Shown: piece by piece, positions 8,451-53,816 of the stretch
How positions within the stretch are numbered: the stretch's first letter is position 1
Layout of the letters: each line of letters begins with the position of its first letter
IMG/VR virus record: IMGVR_UViG_3300021137_000001
Span: 1-64,000 of that record
Length of the DNA stretch: 64,000 nt
Reading direction: 5' to 3' (one strand)
Translations under genes and position numbers: made by a program
The notes under the pieces: model-generated
The model's database searches: none
Seen by the model: only the letters and a program-made list of their open reading frames with translations
Told to the model about the DNA's origin: nothing

Positions 8451-8527
8451 ATCAATAATTGACATCTGTCTGTAATAAATAAAATCATCTTATCCGCAAC
8501 GTATAAATATATGTAAGGAATTAACTT

Positions 8528-9241
8528 ATGTTCTTACAAAATAAATATACAACGTGGTATTATGCAATCATTCACCGCGGTCAAGATAGAATATTAACTG
8601 GTTATAAAGAAAATCATCATATTATACCAAAATCACTCAACGGATCAGACGATAAGAGTAATTTAGTTAGTCTAACTGCTCGAGAACATTTAATATGTCA
8701 TTTATTATTAACTAGAATGACTATTGGATCAAATAAACATAAAATGTTGCATGCAGCGTGGGCATTAACTACCTATCGCGATAATAGTAGAGATACAATT
8801 AAAATAACATCACGGCTATACGAATCATTAAAGATAGCTCGCTCTTTAATGATCACTGCTACACAAAGTGGCGAAAATAATCCATTTTATAATAAAAAAC
8901 ATTCTAATGCTACCCGCATTAAAATGTCACAATCTGCATCAAAACCAAAATCACTTGCATGGAAAGAATCTGCATCAACTAATAGAAAAGGAGACGGCGG
9001 TAGTTTCTTTGGTAAAACTCACTCGGATTCTCAAAAAGAAAAATGGAAAACAGACCCTCGAAGAATTCATATGGGTGCAGAAAATGGATTTTATGGTAAA
9101 ACTCATACTGATGAACAGCGACAAAAGAAACGTGAGGAAAAACTTGCAGCTTCTAAGAAAATATGTTATTATTGTAATAAGAGTGTAGATGCAATGAATT
9201 ATGGGAGATGGCACGGTGATAGATGTAAATCAAAAAAATAG
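8528..9241 (+). CDS. HNH homing endonuclease with NUMOD3-like repeats
   Basis: ENHHIIPKS...NLVSLTAREHLICH; repeated FYGKTHS/FYNKKHS; TATAAATA at 8502-8509. Confidence 0.8.
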   Translation: MFLQNKYTTWYYAIIHRGQDRILTGYKENHHIIPKSLNGSDDKSNLVSLTAREHLICHLLLTRMTIGSNKHKMLHAAWALTTYRDNSRDTIKITSRLYESLKIARSLMITATQSGENNPFYNKKHSNATRIKMSQSASKPKSLAWKESASTNRKGDGGSFFGKTHSDSQKEKWKTDPRRIHMGAENGFYGKTHTDEQRQKKREEKLAASKKICYYCNKSVDAMNYGRWHGDRCKSKK

Positions 9242-20483: not shown

Positions 20484-21401
20484 ATGGCACAAACTCCAGA
20501 CAGCGTCTTAGTTAAAAGACCCTACCAATCAGAAACATTTACAGAAGAACAGCTCTTAGAATTTGCTAAGTGTGCTGACCCAATCACTGGGCCGGAATAC
20601 TTTATGAGTCATTACTTCTACATACAACATCCTACTAAAGGACGTATGTTGTATCAGCCGTTTGAATATCAAAAACGCTTAATTGAAACATATCACAATT
20701 ATAGATTCAGTATCAGTTTAATGCCACGTCAAACTGGTAAATCAACAAGTGCTGCCGGATACTTACTATGGTACGCAATGTTCGTACCCGATGCAACAAT
20801 TCTTATCGCGGCACACAAATATACAGGCTCGCAAGAAATTATGTCACGTATTCGTTACGCATATGAACTATGCCCTGACTTTATACGTGCTGGCGTAACA
20901 ACATACAACAAAGGTAATATCGATTTTGAAAATGGCTCACGTATTAACTCGGCTACAACGACAGAAAACACAGGTCGCGGTATGTCTATATCATTATTAT
21001 ATTGTGATGAGTTCGCATTTGTACGCAGTACAATCGGTCGTGAATTTTGGACTTCTATCAGTCCTACACTAGCAACAGGCGGTAAATGTATTATCACATC
21101 AACTCCTAACTCAGACGAAGATCAATTTGCTACTCTGTGGAAGGGAGCCAACAAATGCGTGGACGATTTTGGAAACGCCACTGCGTTAGGAGTTAATGGG
21201 TTTAAATCATTCCGTAGTTATTGGAGAGAACATCCAGATAGAGATGACACGTGGGCAACGGAACAACGTGCGCAATTAGGTGATGAACGCTTCCGTAGAG
21301 AGATGGATTGCTGTAACGGTGATACAATACTACAATTAGAAATTAATGATGAGCAAAAAATAGTCACAATTGGTGAATTGTTTAATATAATCGATAAATA
21401 A
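20484..21401 (+). CDS. terL: Terminase large subunit, N-terminal half (ATPase) fused to a 30-aa N-intein
   Basis: Walker A PRQTGKS, Walker B LYCDEFAF, ITSTPN; ends RREMD|CCNGDT...IIDK*. Confidence 0.92.
   Translation: MAQTPDSVLVKRPYQSETFTEEQLLEFAKCADPITGPEYFMSHYFYIQHPTKGRMLYQPFEYQKRLIETYHNYRFSISLMPRQTGKSTSAAGYLLWYAMFVPDATILIAAHKYTGSQEIMSRIRYAYELCPDFIRAGVTTYNKGNIDFENGSRINSATTTENTGRGMSISLLYCDEFAFVRSTIGREFWTSISPTLATGGKCIITSTPNSDEDQFATLWKGANKCVDDFGNATALGVNGFKSFRSYWREHPDRDDTWATEQRAQLGDERFRREMDCCNGDTILQLEINDEQKIVTIGELFNIIDK
21309..21398 (+). mobile_element. Split intein N-fragment (30 aa, atypically short)
   Basis: Begins with Cys in a block-A-like CCNGDTILQL, then KIVTIGELF, then stop. Confidence 0.85.
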
Positions 21402-22433
21402 TTGGAGAAGACCAATTTAATTGAGAAATGTATGAGTGATGCAAATTATGTAATATCGAAAATAGATAACAAAAACTATTGTGTATCTAACGGTCAGTTT
21501 ACAAAACATCTCAGAACAAATCAACTCACATATCAAGCATATTATGAAAAATATATAACAGGTACTATTAAATTATGTAGTTGTAGTAAACCATTGACCT
21601 TTTATCAAAAAAATCACACCTATGCTAGCAGTTGCGGAAACCCTGTATGTGTGGGTAAAACTATAGCTAAATCAAAACAATTATGGACAGACGAGCAGAA
21701 GCTATCGGATTCAGCAAACAAGAAAAAAGCTGCCAATGCTAAGACAGACAAACAGAAAGAGCTGCAAGTGGCTCGAGCCAGAGCAACTTTTATGCGCAAG
21801 TATGGAGTTGAATGGAGTTCTAAGTTTGCCGACCAAAAAGAAAAATCTAGAAAGACAAAGAAAGAAAAATATGGTAGCGAAACATATAATAATAGCAAGC
21901 AAACAAGCAATGCCTGGCAAGCAAAGACACTTGATGAAATTTCCAATATAGTATCTAAACGTCGTGCAACTTGTATGGATCGATTTGGGGTCGAAAATGC
22001 TTTAATGAAACCGGAAGCTAGAATAAATTCTGCTAAATCAAATAGTATAGGTCGAGCATTTGTTATGCCATCGGGTAAGGTTGTTGGGGTTCGTGGGTAC
22101 GAAGATACTGTGCTGGCCAACTTATTAAAAGAATACAGCGAATCAGAATTATTATTTGATGATAGGAAAACTATATATAGTTTACCGGTGTTTGCATATA
22201 TAAACGTAAACTTACACCTTGCAACATATTATCCGGATATCTATATTTCAAAAGAGAATAAAATCATCGAAGTAAAAAGCATGTGGTGGTGGAACGGAAA
22301 TGGTAATGAAAAATATAATTCTAGACTAATTAATAATTTACGGAAGAAAGATTCAGTAATAGAGCAAGGATACGAATACGAAGTTTGGTTGTTTAAAAAT
22401 AAAACAGAATATGAGATACTAGCATGGAAATAA
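21402..22433 (+). CDS. Free-standing PD-(D/E)xK-type homing endonuclease between the terL halves (start TTG 21402 or ATG near 21431)
   Basis: GYE...YYPDIYI...IIEVKS; KYG/RFGVEN repeats; Cys motifs. Confidence 0.7.
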   Translation: MEKTNLIEKCMSDANYVISKIDNKNYCVSNGQFTKHLRTNQLTYQAYYEKYITGTIKLCSCSKPLTFYQKNHTYASSCGNPVCVGKTIAKSKQLWTDEQKLSDSANKKKAANAKTDKQKELQVARARATFMRKYGVEWSSKFADQKEKSRKTKKEKYGSETYNNSKQTSNAWQAKTLDEISNIVSKRRATCMDRFGVENALMKPEARINSAKSNSIGRAFVMPSGKVVGVRGYEDTVLANLLKEYSESELLFDDRKTIYSLPVFAYINVNLHLATYYPDIYISKENKIIEVKSMWWWNGNGNEKYNSRLINNLRKKDSVIEQGYEYEVWLFKNKTEYEILAWK

Positions 22434-22765
22434 TGTATAAAGAAAACAAACACGGTTATAAAGTGTTAACTCCTGATGGATATAAATCCTTTGTAGGCAT
22501 TCGGTGTCTTGGCAAAAAAGAAATCCACCGGATTGAATTGGGTACTGACTATTGGATTGAGTGTACATCTAATCATAAGGTATTTGTTAGTGATACTATC
22601 AGAGTTACTGTTGATGAACTTGTAGTAGGAGATATAGTATTAACTAATAGTGGCAATCAACAAGTATCTGCTAAATTAAATTTAGGAAGAGAAGAATTAG
22701 TATACGATTTAATCGAAGTAGACGGTGGGCATCGTTATTATACAAATGGAATATTGTCGTCAAAT
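22424..22765 (+). mobile_element. Split intein C-fragment (114 aa) ending Ser-Asn, followed by Cys+1
   Basis: AAT at 22763-22765, TGT at 22766. Confidence 0.85.
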
Positions 22766-23506
22766 TGTGAATTTATCATCTGGGATGAAACACTTATTAA
22801 CCCAGGGCATTTAGTTGAAATGCAAGGTATTGACCCAATCGAACAGCAAGGACAAATACGTTGGTATAAAAAGCCAAATCCAGCATTTACATATCTCGTT
22901 GCACTTGACCCAAGTCTAGGCACAGGCGGCGACCCAGCGGCAATACAAATATTTGAACTCCCAAGTTTTATACAAGTAGGCGAGTGGCAACATAATCGCA
23001 CACCAGTACAACGTCAAATTGTTATACTAAGTGAGATTACTAAGTACCTTGCTGAAACTGTGCCAGTTAATAGCATATACTATAGCATGGAAAACAACTC
23101 TATCGGCGAAGCGGCATTAGTAACAGTAGCATCGATGGGCGAAGAAAACATTAAGGGAACATTCTTAAACGAACCACGCAAATCAAGTGGCGGAAGTTAT
23201 AGAAAGGGATTTAATACAACACAACGTTCTAAGCTATCTGCTTGCGCAAAGTTAAAAAACTTAATTGAATCTAAACGCTTAACAGTAAACAGTAAGAACT
23301 TAATCTCAGAACTAAAAACATTTGTTGCAAACGGCTCTAGCTTTGCTGCTAAACCCGGCGAAACAGATGACTTAGTAATGAGTGTAGTACTAATGGTACG
23401 CATGGCTATGCTATTGCAATCATACGATGCAAGTTTAGATAGTGCGATGCGTGATACGTTAGATGATTTCATCGAGCCTCTTCCCTGGATAATGACTACA
23501 TATTAG
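22424..23506 (+). CDS. terL: C-intein (114 aa) fused to the terminase large subunit C-terminal half (nuclease)
   Basis: Intein blocks B (CTSNH), F (VYDL) and G (YTNGILSSN|C); then CEFIIWDET, ALDPSLGTGGD, ENN and DDLVM. Confidence 0.9.
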   Translation: MEIMYKENKHGYKVLTPDGYKSFVGIRCLGKKEIHRIELGTDYWIECTSNHKVFVSDTIRVTVDELVVGDIVLTNSGNQQVSAKLNLGREELVYDLIEVDGGHRYYTNGILSSNCEFIIWDETLINPGHLVEMQGIDPIEQQGQIRWYKKPNPAFTYLVALDPSLGTGGDPAAIQIFELPSFIQVGEWQHNRTPVQRQIVILSEITKYLAETVPVNSIYYSMENNSIGEAALVTVASMGEENIKGTFLNEPRKSSGGSYRKGFNTTQRSKLSACAKLKNLIESKRLTVNSKNLISELKTFVANGSSFAAKPGETDDLVMSVVLMVRMAMLLQSYDASLDSAMRDTLDDFIEPLPWIMTTY

Positions 23507-48140: not shown

Positions 48141-48515
48141 ATGGCTACTGGATACGCTCACGCAACAATTGAACGGCAGTTTCTAGCAGAAACAATACGT
48201 AAAGCAAAGTACGCGGCAAAGACAACTAGGAATCTTGCTTTCCTAGTTGACTTGGACTATGTTATTGGTTTACTAAAAGCGCAGTCCGGCAAGTGTGCGA
48301 TTACAGGTTGGGATTTAGAATTTACACGCGGCGGGACCTTCAAGGGAAGTATGAATCCTCGAGGTTGCACGATGGATAGAATTGATAACGACAAAGGTTA
48401 TATTCGAGGTAATATTCAATTGACCTGTGTGTTGCCTAATATGATTCGGGGAACAATGTCGTTGGAGTCATTTAAATCTTTGTGCAATGATGTAGTTGCA
48501 CATACAGGAAAATAA
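48141..48515 (+). CDS. HNH/endonuclease VII-like protein
   Basis: CAITG...DRIDNDKGYIRGNIQLTC. Confidence 0.65.
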   Translation: MATGYAHATIERQFLAETIRKAKYAAKTTRNLAFLVDLDYVIGLLKAQSGKCAITGWDLEFTRGGTFKGSMNPRGCTMDRIDNDKGYIRGNIQLTCVLPNMIRGTMSLESFKSLCNDVVAHTGK

Positions 48516-49870: not shown

Positions 49871-50664
49871 TGGCAACAAAAATTTTAGTAGTCGGATGTT
49901 CGTTTTCAAATGGTCATGGGCTCAATGATCAGGACAATGGCGATTGTAATAAATCTGATCCAAAACTTTGGGTTAATCAGGTATGCAATAAAGTTTGGCC
50001 TAATTCAGACATAACTAATCTTGCGAAAACTGGAGCAAATAATAATTGGATATTCTTTGAAACTATAAGCGCATTATTATTAAATGAATATGATATTGTT
50101 TTAGTAGAATGGACGGCGATACCTAGATTCAATATTAAAGTAGGATTAGAATTGTACACCGTTGAATCAATGTTAAATTCAGAATCAATTGATATTAATA
50201 TTAATAACAATATAACTTATACCAGTAAATGGCTAAACTCATTAGGTGATAATTTACGAAAAATACATAACGATCATTGGGATATTTTAGATCTTGTCAA
50301 ATATATAAATGTCATATTGCAAATACACAAAGGAAAAACATTTTTTATCAATGGGTTGGCTCCGTGGCCAGATCAATATTTTACTAAGAAAAAAATTCAG
50401 TATCCATCTGAATTATCAAATTTTGAACAAAATATGTTTGCTATAAGTACCAGAGATGACGATGAAATATTTGCTCTTTATGAAATGGTACATAATCAAT
50501 ATCAACAATATGGAGGAGTACGTCAAGAGCATTGGTTAAATTTATATAGCTCATTGATGTCGATGCAAGTTGATTATATAAGCGATACAGATCTGCACCC
50601 AGGTTACAAAAGTCAAGATATATTTGCAGAATATTTAATATCACAACTAAGAGAAAATAATTAA
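49870..50664 (+). CDS. SGNH/GDSL hydrolase-like accessory protein
   Basis: LVVGCSFSNG at the N-terminus, DLHPG at the C-terminus; AT-rich. Confidence 0.55.
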   Translation: MATKILVVGCSFSNGHGLNDQDNGDCNKSDPKLWVNQVCNKVWPNSDITNLAKTGANNNWIFFETISALLLNEYDIVLVEWTAIPRFNIKVGLELYTVESMLNSESIDININNNITYTSKWLNSLGDNLRKIHNDHWDILDLVKYINVILQIHKGKTFFINGLAPWPDQYFTKKKIQYPSELSNFEQNMFAISTRDDDEIFALYEMVHNQYQQYGGVRQEHWLNLYSSLMSMQVDYISDTDLHPGYKSQDIFAEYLISQLRENN

Positions 50665-51680
50665 TGGCACTAGCTAGACTGATAATCAAAGATGAAGTTA
50701 ATGTAAAGATCGAAGGACTAGACTTACATGAACGCAAAGAACTCAGCAACATGTTCAAGTATGAAATTCCGGGCGCACGTTATCTACCAAGTGTACGTCT
50801 TGGTCGTTGGGATGGCAAGATTGCTTACTTTCAGTTAGGTGGTAGCACGTACACTAACTTGCTTGCTGAGATATTACCATACTTAGATGAGCGTGGGTAT
50901 AACATTGAGTTGGAAGATTTACGTGACTATAGAACACAGTTTAGTTTTGCGCAGGTAACAGAACAAACATTCGCACACAAAGTATGGCCAGCTAAACATC
51001 CGATTGCGGGCCAGCCAGTTGTGCTACGAGATTATCAAATTGAAATCATTAACAAGTTTCTTGAGAACCCACAGTGCATACAAGAAATTGCAACTGGCGC
51101 AGGTAAGACATTAATTACTGCGGCACTAAGTTATAGCTGTGAACAATACGGTCGTACTGTAGTAATCGTACCAAACAAATCACTTGTTACACAAACAGAA
51201 GCAGACTACATTAACTTGGGACTAGACGTTGGTGTTTACTTTGGTGACAGAAAAGAATATGGACGTACACATACAATATGTACATGGCAAAGTCTTAACA
51301 TTATGCTTAAGAACACTAAGTCAGCAGAAGCCGATGTTACTATAATGGAATTTTTAGAAGGTGTTGTATGCGTTATGGTCGACGAATGTTTTGATAGTGA
51401 TAGTAAGGTATTAACTCCGACTGGATATGTGGCTATTAAAAATATAAAAGCTGGTGACAAAGTAATTAACTATTCGGAAAATACTAAAGAATTTAAGATA
51501 GATACTGTAGTTAAACAACATATAAATTTAACTAATTCGTCTAGCGAAAAAATGTATGAGCTAACCTTTGATAATGGAGTATCTATCCGTGTAACTGGCA
51601 ATCATAAATTTTTAACTAATTTGGGTTGGTGCAGGGCCGACGAATTATCAGATAACCATGAAATTGTAAATAAAACATAA
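50664..51680 (+). CDS. uvsW: UvsW SF2 helicase N-terminal half fused to a 97-aa N-intein
   Basis: LRDYQ, ATGAGKT, VIVPNKSLVTQ, TWQS, VMVDE|CFDSDS...TGNH...NKT*. Confidence 0.9.
   Translation: MALARLIIKDEVNVKIEGLDLHERKELSNMFKYEIPGARYLPSVRLGRWDGKIAYFQLGGSTYTNLLAEILPYLDERGYNIELEDLRDYRTQFSFAQVTEQTFAHKVWPAKHPIAGQPVVLRDYQIEIINKFLENPQCIQEIATGAGKTLITAALSYSCEQYGRTVVIVPNKSLVTQTEADYINLGLDVGVYFGDRKEYGRTHTICTWQSLNIMLKNTKSAEADVTIMEFLEGVVCVMVDECFDSDSKVLTPTGYVAIKNIKAGDKVINYSENTKEFKIDTVVKQHINLTNSSSEKMYELTFDNGVSIRVTGNHKFLTNLGWCRADELSDNHEIVNKT
51387..51677 (+). mobile_element. Split intein N-fragment (97 aa)
   Basis: Block A CFDSDSKVLT, block B VTGNHKF. Confidence 0.88.
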
Positions 51681-51707
51681 ATACATATAACTAATGCAGA
51701 AGTCCTT

Positions 51708-52610
51708 ATGAAAATACAATACAATAAATGGATAGAATTACTCAATGACAGACTAATAGAACATAATCAATCTATTAGAGTAATCGAGTACTCTAGTGGC
51801 ACATTAACATTGTCGAGCGGTGAAACTTTACTAGATAATAAGTTTGAGAAATTTAAAAAACGAGTTATGAATAAAAAAACCACAATGTGGGTAGATAATA
51901 TGGATAACTTATTCCATGGTACAGTTACTGAAAAAGAAATTAAATCTAAATTGGCGGCAATTGGCGGGTTGTCAGTACAAGAAAAATACGGTGAAAATAT
52001 TAGATTAAATCTTAATACAGGTACCCCATGGAATAAAGGTACCAAAGGACAAAATATAGGTACAGGTACTCCCCGACCACAAGCAGTTAAAGACAAAATT
52101 AGTGAAAAAAATTCCGGCAACAGAAATGGTATGTACGGAATTAAGATGACTGAACAAGATAGACAAAAAAAATCATCATTAATGAAACAAAAAATATTAG
52201 CAGGAGAGTTTACTCCTAACAGCAATAATAGAAATACTCATTGGGACACGAAATTTAATAGTAAATCGTATAGGTCAAGTTGGGAGGCATTATATCAATA
52301 TATTAACCCTTTTGCAGAATACGAGACACTGAGGATAGAATATAATTTGCATGATAAAAGACATATTTATATTGTGGATTTTGTAGATCATGTCAATAAA
52401 CTAGTGGTAGAAGTTAAACCTAAAGAATTGTGCATTGGAGAGAAATTTGGTGCGAAAATGTCGGCACTAACTGCATGGGCCAACAATAATAACTATAAAA
52501 CACTATTAGTTAATAAAAAGTGGTTACAAGAACAAGTAGTTGATATTGATTACAGTATGTTTGATACAAAAACTGCAAAAAAAATAAAGGCGTTATATGA
52601 AACTAATTAA
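51708..52610 (+). CDS. Free-standing homing endonuclease (NUMOD3-like plus TnsA-like PD-(D/E)xK) between the uvsW halves
   Basis: PWNKG, NGMYG; YRSSWE...YIVDF...VEVKP. Confidence 0.75.
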   Translation: MKIQYNKWIELLNDRLIEHNQSIRVIEYSSGTLTLSSGETLLDNKFEKFKKRVMNKKTTMWVDNMDNLFHGTVTEKEIKSKLAAIGGLSVQEKYGENIRLNLNTGTPWNKGTKGQNIGTGTPRPQAVKDKISEKNSGNRNGMYGIKMTEQDRQKKSSLMKQKILAGEFTPNSNNRNTHWDTKFNSKSYRSSWEALYQYINPFAEYETLRIEYNLHDKRHIYIVDFVDHVNKLVVEVKPKELCIGEKFGAKMSALTAWANNNNYKTLLVNKKWLQEQVVDIDYSMFDTKTAKKIKALYETN

Positions 52611-52701
52611 CCGAACAGAAATATCTAAACCGGCCAATGTATATAATTTACATATAGAAAATGACCACAACTATATTGTCGACGGAGCAGTGGTGTCAAA
52701 T
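52597..52701 (+). mobile_element. Split intein C-fragment (35 aa) ending Ser-Asn, followed by Cys+1
   Basis: AAT at 52699-52701, TGT at 52702. Confidence 0.88.
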
Positions 52702-53436
52702 TGTCATATGGCCAAAGCGGATGCGCTGAAAACTTTATTAACGGGAGTGATGTCACACATACCTATCCGATGGGGCTTAACGGGCACAATACCTAAAGAA
52801 ATGTACGAGTTTATGAGCCTAAAGTGTTCATTGGGTGAAGTCATTGGGCGTTTAAGTGCAAGTGAATTACAAGATCAGGGTGTACTTGCTAACTGTCATG
52901 TAAACGTTGTACAGCTAATAGACCATGTTGAATATAAGGATTATCAAAGCGAGTTAAAATATCTATTAGAGACAGACGCACGTATTGATTATATAAGTAA
53001 AATGATAGAGCGTATTAGATTAACTGGCAATACACTTGTCTTAGTTGATCGCATCGCACCGGGCAAAGCATTAGTTGAGCTAGTTAAAGATGCTGTGTTT
53101 GTATCAGGAGGAACAAAAGCAAATGATAGGAAAGAAAGTTATGATGAGTTTGCAACCAGTGATAACTTTGTTGCTGTTGCCACTTATGGGGTTGCTGCTG
53201 TTGGTATCAATATCCCTCGCGTTTTTAACCTTGTGCTCATTGAGCCTGGTAAGAGCTTTGTGCGGGTCATCCAAAGTATCGGGCGTGGCATTCGTAAAGC
53301 GGAAGACAAAGATTTCGTCCAAATCTGGGACGTAACGTCAACTTGTAAGTTTGCTAAACGACATCTTACAGTCAGAAAGAAATTTTATTCTGAGGCCTCA
53401 TATCCTTACGCAATAGAAAAAACCGAATGGAAATAA
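52597..53436 (+). CDS. uvsW: C-intein (35 aa) fused to the UvsW C-terminal half
   Basis: VYNLHIENDHNYIVDGAVVSN|CHMAK; GLTGT, GINIP, QSIGRGIR. Confidence 0.9.
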   Translation: MKLINRTEISKPANVYNLHIENDHNYIVDGAVVSNCHMAKADALKTLLTGVMSHIPIRWGLTGTIPKEMYEFMSLKCSLGEVIGRLSASELQDQGVLANCHVNVVQLIDHVEYKDYQSELKYLLETDARIDYISKMIERIRLTGNTLVLVDRIAPGKALVELVKDAVFVSGGTKANDRKESYDEFATSDNFVAVATYGVAAVGINIPRVFNLVLIEPGKSFVRVIQSIGRGIRKAEDKDFVQIWDVTSTCKFAKRHLTVRKKFYSEASYPYAIEKTEWK

Positions 53437-53455
53437 TTAATCAAGGAGCATTAAA

Positions 53456-53532
53456 ATTCACATCCTCACCTTAGAAAATACCGCATACGAAATGAATGAA
53501 ATCCCAGATGAAGTGGAGGATTTACGCTTTGC
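53456..53532 (+). repeat. Duplicated 5' end of the gene at 54485 (copy 1, truncated)
   Basis: 53471-53532 matches 54500-54561 at 60 of 62 nt; codons 2-5 are synonymous variants. Confidence 0.9.
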
Positions 53533-53597
53533 GCTATTTGGATTGAATTCTGACAGATTATGTAGACCAAAAGATTTTAGCAACACCACCATACCTT

Positions 53598-53816
53598 ATG
53601 AATACTAACATAGTTTGCGCTATGTTGGAATATTTTGATACAAATGCAATTAGTATTACAGATAATGTAGGTGTAATATTACCTGCTGATCCAAAGTGTG
53701 CGGACTATTATCTGTATAACGCATGGATTATTAAAACAAAACAAATTGATCAAATAGTATGGTCTGATGAACTTGTTGCTAGTTTGCCATTTGACAGAAC
53801 ATTACGTAGACATTAA
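53598..53816 (+). CDS. Small hypothetical protein within the insertion
   Basis: ORF between the duplicated segments. Confidence 0.4.
   Translation: MNTNIVCAMLEYFDTNAISITDNVGVILPADPKCADYYLYNAWIIKTKQIDQIVWSDELVASLPFDRTLRRH

Follow-up and report, generated by a model that had tools for sequence, protein, structure and literature searches.

Fractured genes, in which a split intein and a free-standing endonuclease gene interrupt a phage gene for an enzyme of DNA metabolism, were described in 2009 by Dassa, London, Stoddard, Schueler-Furman & Pietrokovski, with gp41-1, gp41-8, NrdJ-1, IMPDH-1, NrdA-2 and others as examples (PMC2677866). In the published layout, the spacer measures 27-51 nucleotides (nt), the endonuclease gene lies on the same strand, the reading frame of the C-terminal intein fragment (IntC) overlaps by 6-69 bp, and in 15 of 16 loci a hairpin with a TATAAATA element is found in the 5' untranslated region of the endonuclease gene (PMC2677866). 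Reviews have pointed out that inteins favour P-loop as well as Walker B motifs in ATPases (PMC4760082). Moreover, the uvsW gene of phage T4 is the target of a free-standing GIY-YIG endonuclease, SegE, encoded between inh and uvsW (PMC2988022). In this study, we report that the uvsW gene of a 329-kb jumbo phage is very probably a fractured gene of this type, carrying a functional split intein and a free-standing homing endonuclease gene between DE and CH of its DECH motif. The gene lies in the window analysed here, the first 64 kb (64,000 nt) of the 329,321-bp uncultured viral contig IMGVR_UViG_3300021137_000001, in which window and contig coordinates coincide.

Three open reading frames (ORFs) on the plus strand fill positions 50664-53436 in the ORF list (Table 1). 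The division made of them in the original prediction, namely an N-half that runs to VMVDE followed by a 97-residue N-terminal intein fragment (IntN), and a 35-residue IntC followed by CHMAK, proved exact to the residue, with the ORFs and the domain scores in agreement. The N-half was matched by the Pfam family ResIII (1.7e-13), by DEAD in the locus scan as well, and at the borderline by UvsW_N (25.2 bits, cut-off 25.3); the C-half was matched by Helicase_C (8.3e-8). With the halves searched separately, T4 UvsW (PDB 2oca) matched the N-half at 2.6e-10 and the C-half at 1.2e-19, and the T4 UvsW structure 1rif matched the N-half at 7e-11. The residues D-E-C-H-L-A of T4 UvsW align on S-N/C-H-M-A of the window (here and below a slash marks the junction), so that DECH stands at that position in T4, and the intein therefore separates the E from the C in helicase motif II, the +1 nucleophile being the native cysteine of DECH. 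Related loci were taken as the best 80 of 591 matching viral contigs, and 46 of them are uninterrupted and read VMVDE-C-HMAK without a gap exactly at the junction, which bears out the earlier claim that splicing would restore DECH. The joined exteins of the window are 93% identical to the empty allele L032 over 485 columns. Since the 46 uninterrupted loci share the exact junction and T4 UvsW matches both halves, the feature is not a chance pattern. Helicase activity would, on this arrangement, depend strictly on trans-splicing.

Compared with the published fractured genes, the locus has the same order of parts, a spacer of 27 nt, an overlap of 14 nt between the endonuclease and IntC ORFs, a TATAAATA-like element before the endonuclease, a phage context and a host enzyme of DNA metabolism. 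It differs from them in its host gene, UvsW being absent from the eight host enzymes of that study, in which the word UvsW does not occur (PMC2677866), and in its insertion in motif II of a superfamily 2 (SF2) helicase. Moreover, its endonuclease is TnsA-like PD-(D/E)xK with NUMOD3, whereas the published ones are GIY-YIG or Vsr-like, and the hairpin finds no clear support here. On this comparison, uvsW of the window is a fractured gene in the sense of the 2009 study, in a new host gene and at a new insertion site. The guanine plus cytosine content is 31.1% in the cassette and 40.0% in the exteins, the locus is identical in an independent sample (L004), and an Rfam scan of 50300-53800 found no intron and no other RNA family.

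The intein fragments scored well above the thresholds of the intein models: 40.9 bits with intein_Nterm (TIGR01445, cut-off 24.5) over residues 242-318 of ORF 1, 20.0 bits with intein_Cterm (TIGR01443, cut-off 15.6) over residues 15-36 of the C-half, and 35.9 bits with PT-HINT of Pfam (cut-off 27.7). All 18 loci compared, those of Salmonella phage S16 and Proteus phage PM2 included, keep Cys1, the terminal Asn, Cys+1, block F and the His of TxxH; the Thr of this motif is kept in 16 of the 18 and replaced by Ser in L046 and L066. These features point to a canonical class-1 naturally split intein of 97/35 residues with Cys1 and Cys+1. It resembles the Ssp and Npu DnaE inteins in its canonical split site, in Cys1 and Cys+1, and in the size of the fragments (about 100/35), whereas the DnaE halves are encoded far apart and without an endonuclease. 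The closest solved inteins are the DnaB mini-inteins (1e-3 to 2.5e-5), and no close sequence relationship to the DnaE inteins was detectable. At least 218 clusters of N-halves (90% identity) carry this IntN.

Evidence for recent movement of the cassette came from the comparison of the window with two fractured loci, L005 and L033, both from other samples than the window. The cassette (51387-52701) has 2 mismatches in 1315 positions relative to L005 and 0 in 1315 relative to L033, and the distal exteins differ from those of L005 and L033 at 25-27% of sites despite the near-identical cassette. In the distal N-extein (50664-51374) there are 188 mismatches in 709 positions relative to L005 and 118 in 711 relative to the empty L032, and in the last 12 nt of the N-extein (51375-51386) none in 12 relative to L005 and L033 and 1 in 12 relative to L032. 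On the other side of the cassette, the first 68 nt of the C-extein (52702-52769) match L005 and L033 throughout (0/68) and differ from L032 at 15 of 65 positions, and the rest of the C-extein (52770-53298) differs at 132 of 527 from L005 and at 42 of 529 from L032. The contrast between the first 68 nt and the rest is significant by Fisher's test, both for L005 (p = 2.5e-8) and for L032 (p = 4.6e-4). The identical tract running 68 nt into the C-extein bears the signature of break-initiated gene conversion and reads as a co-conversion tract; because the co-conversion is asymmetric, the cut site probably lies 3' of the insertion point. In the extein tree, constructed like the allele-state counts below from the 70 rows with complete exteins, the window is nested inside a clade of empty alleles with a Shimodaira-Hasegawa-like approximate likelihood ratio test (SH-aLRT) support of 99, and its closest extein relatives, L029-L032, are all empty (89% amino-acid identity in the N-extein and 95-97% in the C-extein). 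Presence of the intein changes at least five times on this tree, and four of the changes are forced by well-supported branches. Recent homing of the cassette is thus well supported, because a near-identical cassette occurs in divergent alleles, a co-conversion tract adjoins it and the exteins are nested among empty alleles.

The 70 rows comprise 46 empty alleles, 19 fractured alleles, 4 with a mini-intein and 1 with a decayed endonuclease gene, so that the intein is patchily distributed. In the fractured relatives the endonuclease gene is intact. The decayed case, L066 (1123-1707), is still split and has only endonuclease residues 231-300, the last 70 codons, left. Loci L007-L010 have a contiguous, stop-free mini-intein at the same site (e.g. 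L007 2935-3351). The linker of L007 encodes, in the endonuclease frame, the last 17 codons of the endonuclease (RFDNNTARKIKTLYETN, then stop); this frame is another than that of the mini-intein, and the linker is joined to the end of IntN at a shared CACGA microhomology. In the extein tree the clade of L007-L010 is sister to the fractured L016 and L017 (SH-aLRT 99). Since the linker keeps endonuclease codons and the clade is sister to fractured loci, we conclude that this mini-intein arose by deletion of the endonuclease gene and re-fusion of the split intein. Two other loci deviate: in L023 (5724-6971) the IntN ORF is continuous with that of the endonuclease, which may be a fusion or a sequencing error, and L006 (2112-2366) has a 12-amino-acid deletion in IntN.

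A second UvsW intein was found in relatives at the Walker A P-loop (GAGK/T), contiguous in P0130 and P0171 and split in P0127, P0145, P0173 and P0189. In L083 (2438-5910), where this P-loop intein is split around a Vsr-like endonuclease, UvsW is encoded in three pieces (Table 1) and the split intein at DE/CH has lost its endonuclease; a helicase of this type would need two separate trans-splicing reactions.

The endonuclease carries NUMOD3-like motifs at about residues 103-146 and a C-terminal TnsA-like PD-(D/E)xK domain at residues 171-300, with the conserved site SSWE(193) ... D224 ... E235-x-K237. Across 40 sequences, E193, D224 and E235 never vary, and at least 90% have K237, for which S16, PM2 and L026 have Arg. 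Among 38 relatives, TnsA-like_N was matched in 17 (best 1.6e-8) and NUMOD3 in 15 (best 6.1e-8). The predicted model of the full-length protein has a mean predicted local distance difference test (pLDDT) score of 85, and that of the catalytic domain 91.6. Searched against viral models (BFVD), the catalytic-domain model matched TnsA-N-domain proteins at 8e-11 and 3e-10, a NUMOD3 protein at 1.9e-19 and the PM2 protein at 5.8e-11. The label NUMOD3/TnsA-like, given to this 300-residue ORF in the original prediction, is sustained by the Pfam matches in relatives and by the viral TnsA-N models. The predicted fold is accordingly a restriction-endonuclease fold of the TnsA-like PD-(D/E)xK type, an assignment from models that we take as settled because the domain model matched the viral library. 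The non-significant matches obtained with Foldseek in the PDB were also mostly PD-(D/E)xK proteins, among them TnsA (probability 0.93), Cas4 SSO0001, XisH and I-Bth0305I (0.5).

The N-terminal nuclease domain of Tn7 TnsA (1f1z, 1t0f; PF08722) is the closest named fold (Foldseek probability 0.89-0.93, with a PDB E-value of 0.2 that is not significant), but the window protein has no transposon context and no TnsB or TnsC, and is fused to NUMOD3 motifs. Like I-Bth0305I of the EDxHD family (PMC3239194), it combines an N-terminal NUMOD-type DNA-binding region with a C-terminal restriction-endonuclease-fold domain and occurs in fractured genes; unlike it, it has an E...D...ExK site and no His-based one, and the match to 3r3p reached a probability of 0.5 at an E-value of 0.5. 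Membership in the EDxHD (Vsr-like) family was ruled out, as the catalytic His motif is missing and ExK stands in its place; Vsr and 3r3p gave no match in the PDB sequence searches, and the structural match to 3r3p is weak. Nor is it a GIY-YIG endonuclease. The whole endonuclease retrieved 488 proteins, and the domain profile 1006 representative proteins at E <=1e-3 (620 at <=1e-10), most of the 1006 being about 300 amino acids long with the domain at the C-terminus. No paper on NUMOD3 together with TnsA was found in the searchable literature, in which this lineage is experimentally uncharacterised.

The same cassette is present in cultured phages. In Salmonella phage S16, gp114 ends in MMNDE/CFDGDT..., gp114.1 is a 291-residue 'hypothetical protein', and gp115 reads ALAHN/CHLATGK; the arrangement in Proteus phage PM2 is as in S16. 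A translated search found the IntN in six Gelderlandvirus phages and PM2. S16 and PM2 share with the window 59-64% identity in IntN, 40-43% in the endonuclease, 49% in IntC and 25-27% in the exteins, and by these figures the cassette is conserved far more strongly than the gene that hosts it, over a very wide distance between phages. The families phrog_16259 and phrog_9690 each match nearly the full length of one half, the intein part included. Prevotella phage Lak-B2 (L086 1239-4035; 385.7-388.5 kb) has a UvsW-like helicase in which a related IntN interrupts IIDE/C, and about 1 kb downstream lies a nuclease that is likewise related; the phage's record is without annotation, and its ORFs look broken under table 11, Lak phages using an alternative code. 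The original prediction could recall no characterised split intein in UvsW. No paper on a UvsW intein was found in the searchable full-text literature, and to that extent the statement holds, but the split gene is already in GenBank unrecognised, where the records of S16, STP4-a, PM2 and others annotate it as helicase, hypothetical and helicase. In S16, a gene for a homing endonuclease of the GIY-YIG type, gp113 (L001 2628-3263), also separates inh from the N-half of uvsW, and because it lies beside the cassette, the S16 uvsW region carries two mobile nucleases. gp113 occupies the position of T4 SegE, and SegE makes uvsW an established homing-endonuclease target in T4-like phages; SegE, in contrast to the cassette, is a case of intronless homing from outside the gene, which has no intein and is whole.

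The region before the endonuclease contains a conserved element (Table 1). The 32 nt 5' of the endonuclease start have a mean identity of 80.6% across nine loci, and in the same comparison the endonuclease coding sequence has 46% at third codon positions and 67% at positions 1 and 2; on these values the element is clearly constrained. The spacer holds (C/T)ATAAATAC, which resembles the T4-type late-promoter core present in the published fractured genes (PMC2677866). The complement, GTATTTATG, takes in the start codon, and 83% of the cells pair in register, against 22-43% when the partner is slid. Leading candidates for its role are a late promoter and translational sequestration by a start-codon hairpin, as reportedly described for mobE of Aeh1, and the spacer might place the endonuclease under late-phase control. 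Within the window, neither TATAAATA (5 copies, 11.9 expected) nor ATAAATAC (3 copies, 7.7 expected) is enriched, and a scan for sigma-70 promoters and terminators found no more sites than in shuffled sequence. As a separate observation, a free-standing endonuclease gene at 8528-9241 (NUMOD3 3.7e-13, HNH 5e-5) is preceded by a perfect TATAAATA at 8502-8509, 19 nt ahead of the start codon; the plus strand of the window has only three such copies.

In the reading that we prefer, the half-proteins would be translated separately, IntN (97 amino acids) and IntC (35 amino acids) would associate, and Cys1, the +1 Cys and Asn35 would perform protein trans-splicing to yield a 485-residue UvsW with DECH intact. 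The 300-residue NUMOD3 and TnsA-like protein would cleave, close to the DE/CH codons, those uvsW alleles of co-infecting relatives that have no intein, and recombinational repair would copy the cassette with some flanking extein into the cut allele. Several points weigh against this account. Splicing, DNA cleavage and the cut site are inferred from sequence and not observed, and the environmental sequences are all metagenome assemblies. The penultimate intein residue is Ser in the window, not the usual His; it is Ser or Ala across the freshwater clade and His in S16 and PM2, and a residue other than His departs from the commonest intein pattern without being disqualifying. The window endonuclease falls below the Pfam cut-off for TnsA-like_N (19.6 bits, cut-off 26.5), neither the endonuclease by itself nor the 40-sequence profile retrieved anything useful in sequence searches of the PDB, and Foldseek searches of the PDB with the whole model and the catalytic domain gave no significant match (E >=0.1). 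For the spacer hairpin there is no covariation and RNAalifold predicts no structure, and the window copy is a weak hairpin, mismatched at two positions and with a z-score of -0.38 for its fold. Finally, transfer of the cassette would in principle be possible by ordinary recombination between phages, with no cut by the endonuclease. From this last point follows an account that we consider quite unlikely, in which the split intein is functional and the endonuclease no longer drives spread, the shared cassette being due to homologous recombination or to inheritance with extein replacement. Points that would suit it are the mosaicism of phage genomes, the different genes found next to uvsW from locus to locus, the fact that cleavage of empty alleles is only deduced, and the persistence of endonuclease-free or decayed inteins, split or re-fused, in L066, L083 and L007-L010. 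It is harder to reconcile with the identical tract from 12 nt before to 68 nt after the cassette, as predicted by break-initiated gene conversion, with an intact endonuclease ORF in which the catalytic residues are retained and on which purifying selection appears to act, and with the nesting of the window exteins among empty alleles.

The selection analysis bears on this and on two further accounts. The ratio of nonsynonymous to synonymous substitution rates (dN/dS) was about 0.08-0.17 for exteins, IntN and endonuclease (about 0.13 for IntN), values that are rough, as dS is saturated, and these parts have no internal stops; for IntC, the proportions of nonsynonymous (pN) and synonymous (pS) differences were 0.14 and 0.74. 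Together these values point to purifying selection on exteins, IntN, endonuclease and IntC, and count, like the lack of stops and frameshifts, against the hardly credible case of a dead locus, in which uvsW would be a disrupted pseudogene or the assembly would be in error. That case could draw on the purely metagenomic nature of the data and on the dispensability of uvsW in T4, but the locus was assembled in two samples (L003, L004), the IntN-bearing N-halves form 218 clusters, and the arrangement is present in viable cultured phages. It is also very improbable that the two parts of the helicase function unligated, held together by intein fragments that do no more than dimerise, a situation comparable to the split NrdA of phage Aeh1, which has no intein. 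About 130 residues of intein would then stay inside motif II, the splicing nucleophiles and the residues of blocks B, F and G are conserved across very divergent hosts, and the in-frame contiguous mini-intein of relatives could be removed only by splicing; in favour of the idea stand the missing penultimate His of the window intein and the ability of split proteins to assemble non-covalently (PMC3045599).

Table 1. Features of the window and of related loci, with positions, strand and distinguishing characters
Feature	Position	Strand	Characters
ORF 1, UvsW N-half and IntN	50664-51680	+	338 amino acids, then stop
UvsW N-extein, 241 amino acids, ends VMVDE	50664-51386	+	UvsW N-terminal domain, Walker A (TGAGKT), D-E of motif II
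IntN, 97 amino acids plus stop, starts CFDSDSKVL	51387-51680	+	Cys1 (block A), VTGNHKF (block B, TxxH)
Spacer, 27 nt	51681-51707	+	Between IntN ORF and endonuclease ORF
Conserved spacer element	51676-51710	+	CATAAATAC, short loop, GTCCTTATG including the endonuclease start codon; equivalents in 13 loci
ORF 2, free-standing endonuclease, 300 amino acids	51708-52610	+	N-terminal domain, NUMOD3-like motifs, TnsA-like PD-(D/E)xK domain
ORF 3, IntC and UvsW C-half	52597-53436	+	279 amino acids
IntC, 35 amino acids, ends VVSN	52597-52701	+	Block F (VYNLHIENDHNY), block G with terminal Asn35
UvsW C-extein, 244 amino acids plus stop, starts CHMAK	52702-53436	+	Cys of DECH as +1 nucleophile; helicase motifs III-VI
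Tract shared with L005 and L033	51375-52769	+	0-2 mismatches in 1395 nt
Window terL, Terminase_6N and short IntN	20484-21401		IntN of about 30 amino acids
Window terL, nuclease between the halves	21402-22433		DUF7487 nuclease, 343 amino acids, 5e-31; phrog 'homing endonuclease'
Window terL, long IntC and Terminase_6C	22424-23506		IntC of about 115 amino acids ending SSN/C
L083 UvsW, piece 1			N-terminus and 42-amino-acid IntN
L083 endonuclease after piece 1			Vsr-like; best PDB matches Vsr, E 0.1
L083 UvsW, piece 2			135-amino-acid IntC, middle extein of about 105 amino acids and DE/C IntN
L083 spacer, 87 nt, then piece 3			Scraps of TnsA-like gene only

The original prediction had counted uvsW as a second fractured essential gene in one window. 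The other is the gene for the large terminase, terL, which is fractured at 20484-23506, but 'essential' is too strong for UvsW. T4 uvsW mutants are viable and uvsW is dispensable in T4, and the word is therefore to be softened; UvsW is better called a conserved T4-like core gene. The window terL is an atypical split of the AceL-TerL and GOS-TerL kind, and its endonuclease belongs to a different family from the UvsW endonuclease (21% identity). AceL-TerL and GOS-TerL resemble the uvsW locus in being naturally split inteins in a phage ATPase, and differ from it in having a short IntN (25-41 amino acids) and a long IntC, whereas the UvsW intein is canonical 97/35 (PMC11766414). In Yersinia phage phiR1-RT (L085 1920-4769), g166 ends at Walker B with IYIDE/C and the short IntN of an atypical split intein, g167 is an endonuclease, and g168 has a long IntC ending HN/C. 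About 30 other Tevenvirinae records likewise have a split terL whose endonuclease belongs to this TnsA-like catalytic family, and records of the phiR1-RT type annotate only 'terminase large subunit (x2)' and 'endonuclease'. Because the same catalytic family sits in the split terL of cultured Tevenvirinae, the TnsA-like lineage appears to serve split inteins at (I/V)DE/C of two different ATPases, UvsW and TerL. About 2 kb upstream of uvsW, at 48141-48515, the window also has an ORF for a 124-residue endonuclease VII/HNH-like protein (phrog_3322, 3.4e-20), a candidate mobile nuclease.

Taken together, these observations would also admit a wider reading, which we hold to be unlikely as a whole, according to which the endonuclease founds an uncharacterised lineage with about 1000 representative relatives, serving UvsW and TerL inteins, the element may be more than selfish, and its cycle is reversible. 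With the break in UvsW lying within motif II, the moment at which the halves meet could act as a gate on helicase activity. The conserved late-promoter-like spacer precedes both the endonuclease ORF and the start of the C-half, which overlap each other, and trans-splicing could for this reason also set the time at which origin-dependent replication gives way to the recombination-dependent mode. The cycle appears reversible in that fractured genes re-fuse to contiguous mini-inteins, and UvsW of some relatives appears to be assembled from three pieces by two split inteins.

The type of element described here is known; what is new is the UvsW host gene, the motif II site and the uncharacterised endonuclease family. 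With this locus, UvsW and SF2 motif II join the short list of naturally fractured genes. The canonical 97/35 Cys1/Cys+1 split intein is a new one and, together with the second intein of relatives with its short IntN, may be a candidate tool for protein ligation. The TnsA-like PD-(D/E)xK family with NUMOD3 is common in phages, where it is labelled only 'hypothetical' or 'endonuclease', and the presence of the cassette in cultured Salmonella and Proteus phages makes the proposed activities testable at the bench and the annotations correctable. That every stage of the homing cycle is found at a single site, and with it a co-conversion tract that can be measured, is natural evidence of unusual directness that a split-intein cassette is actively homing.

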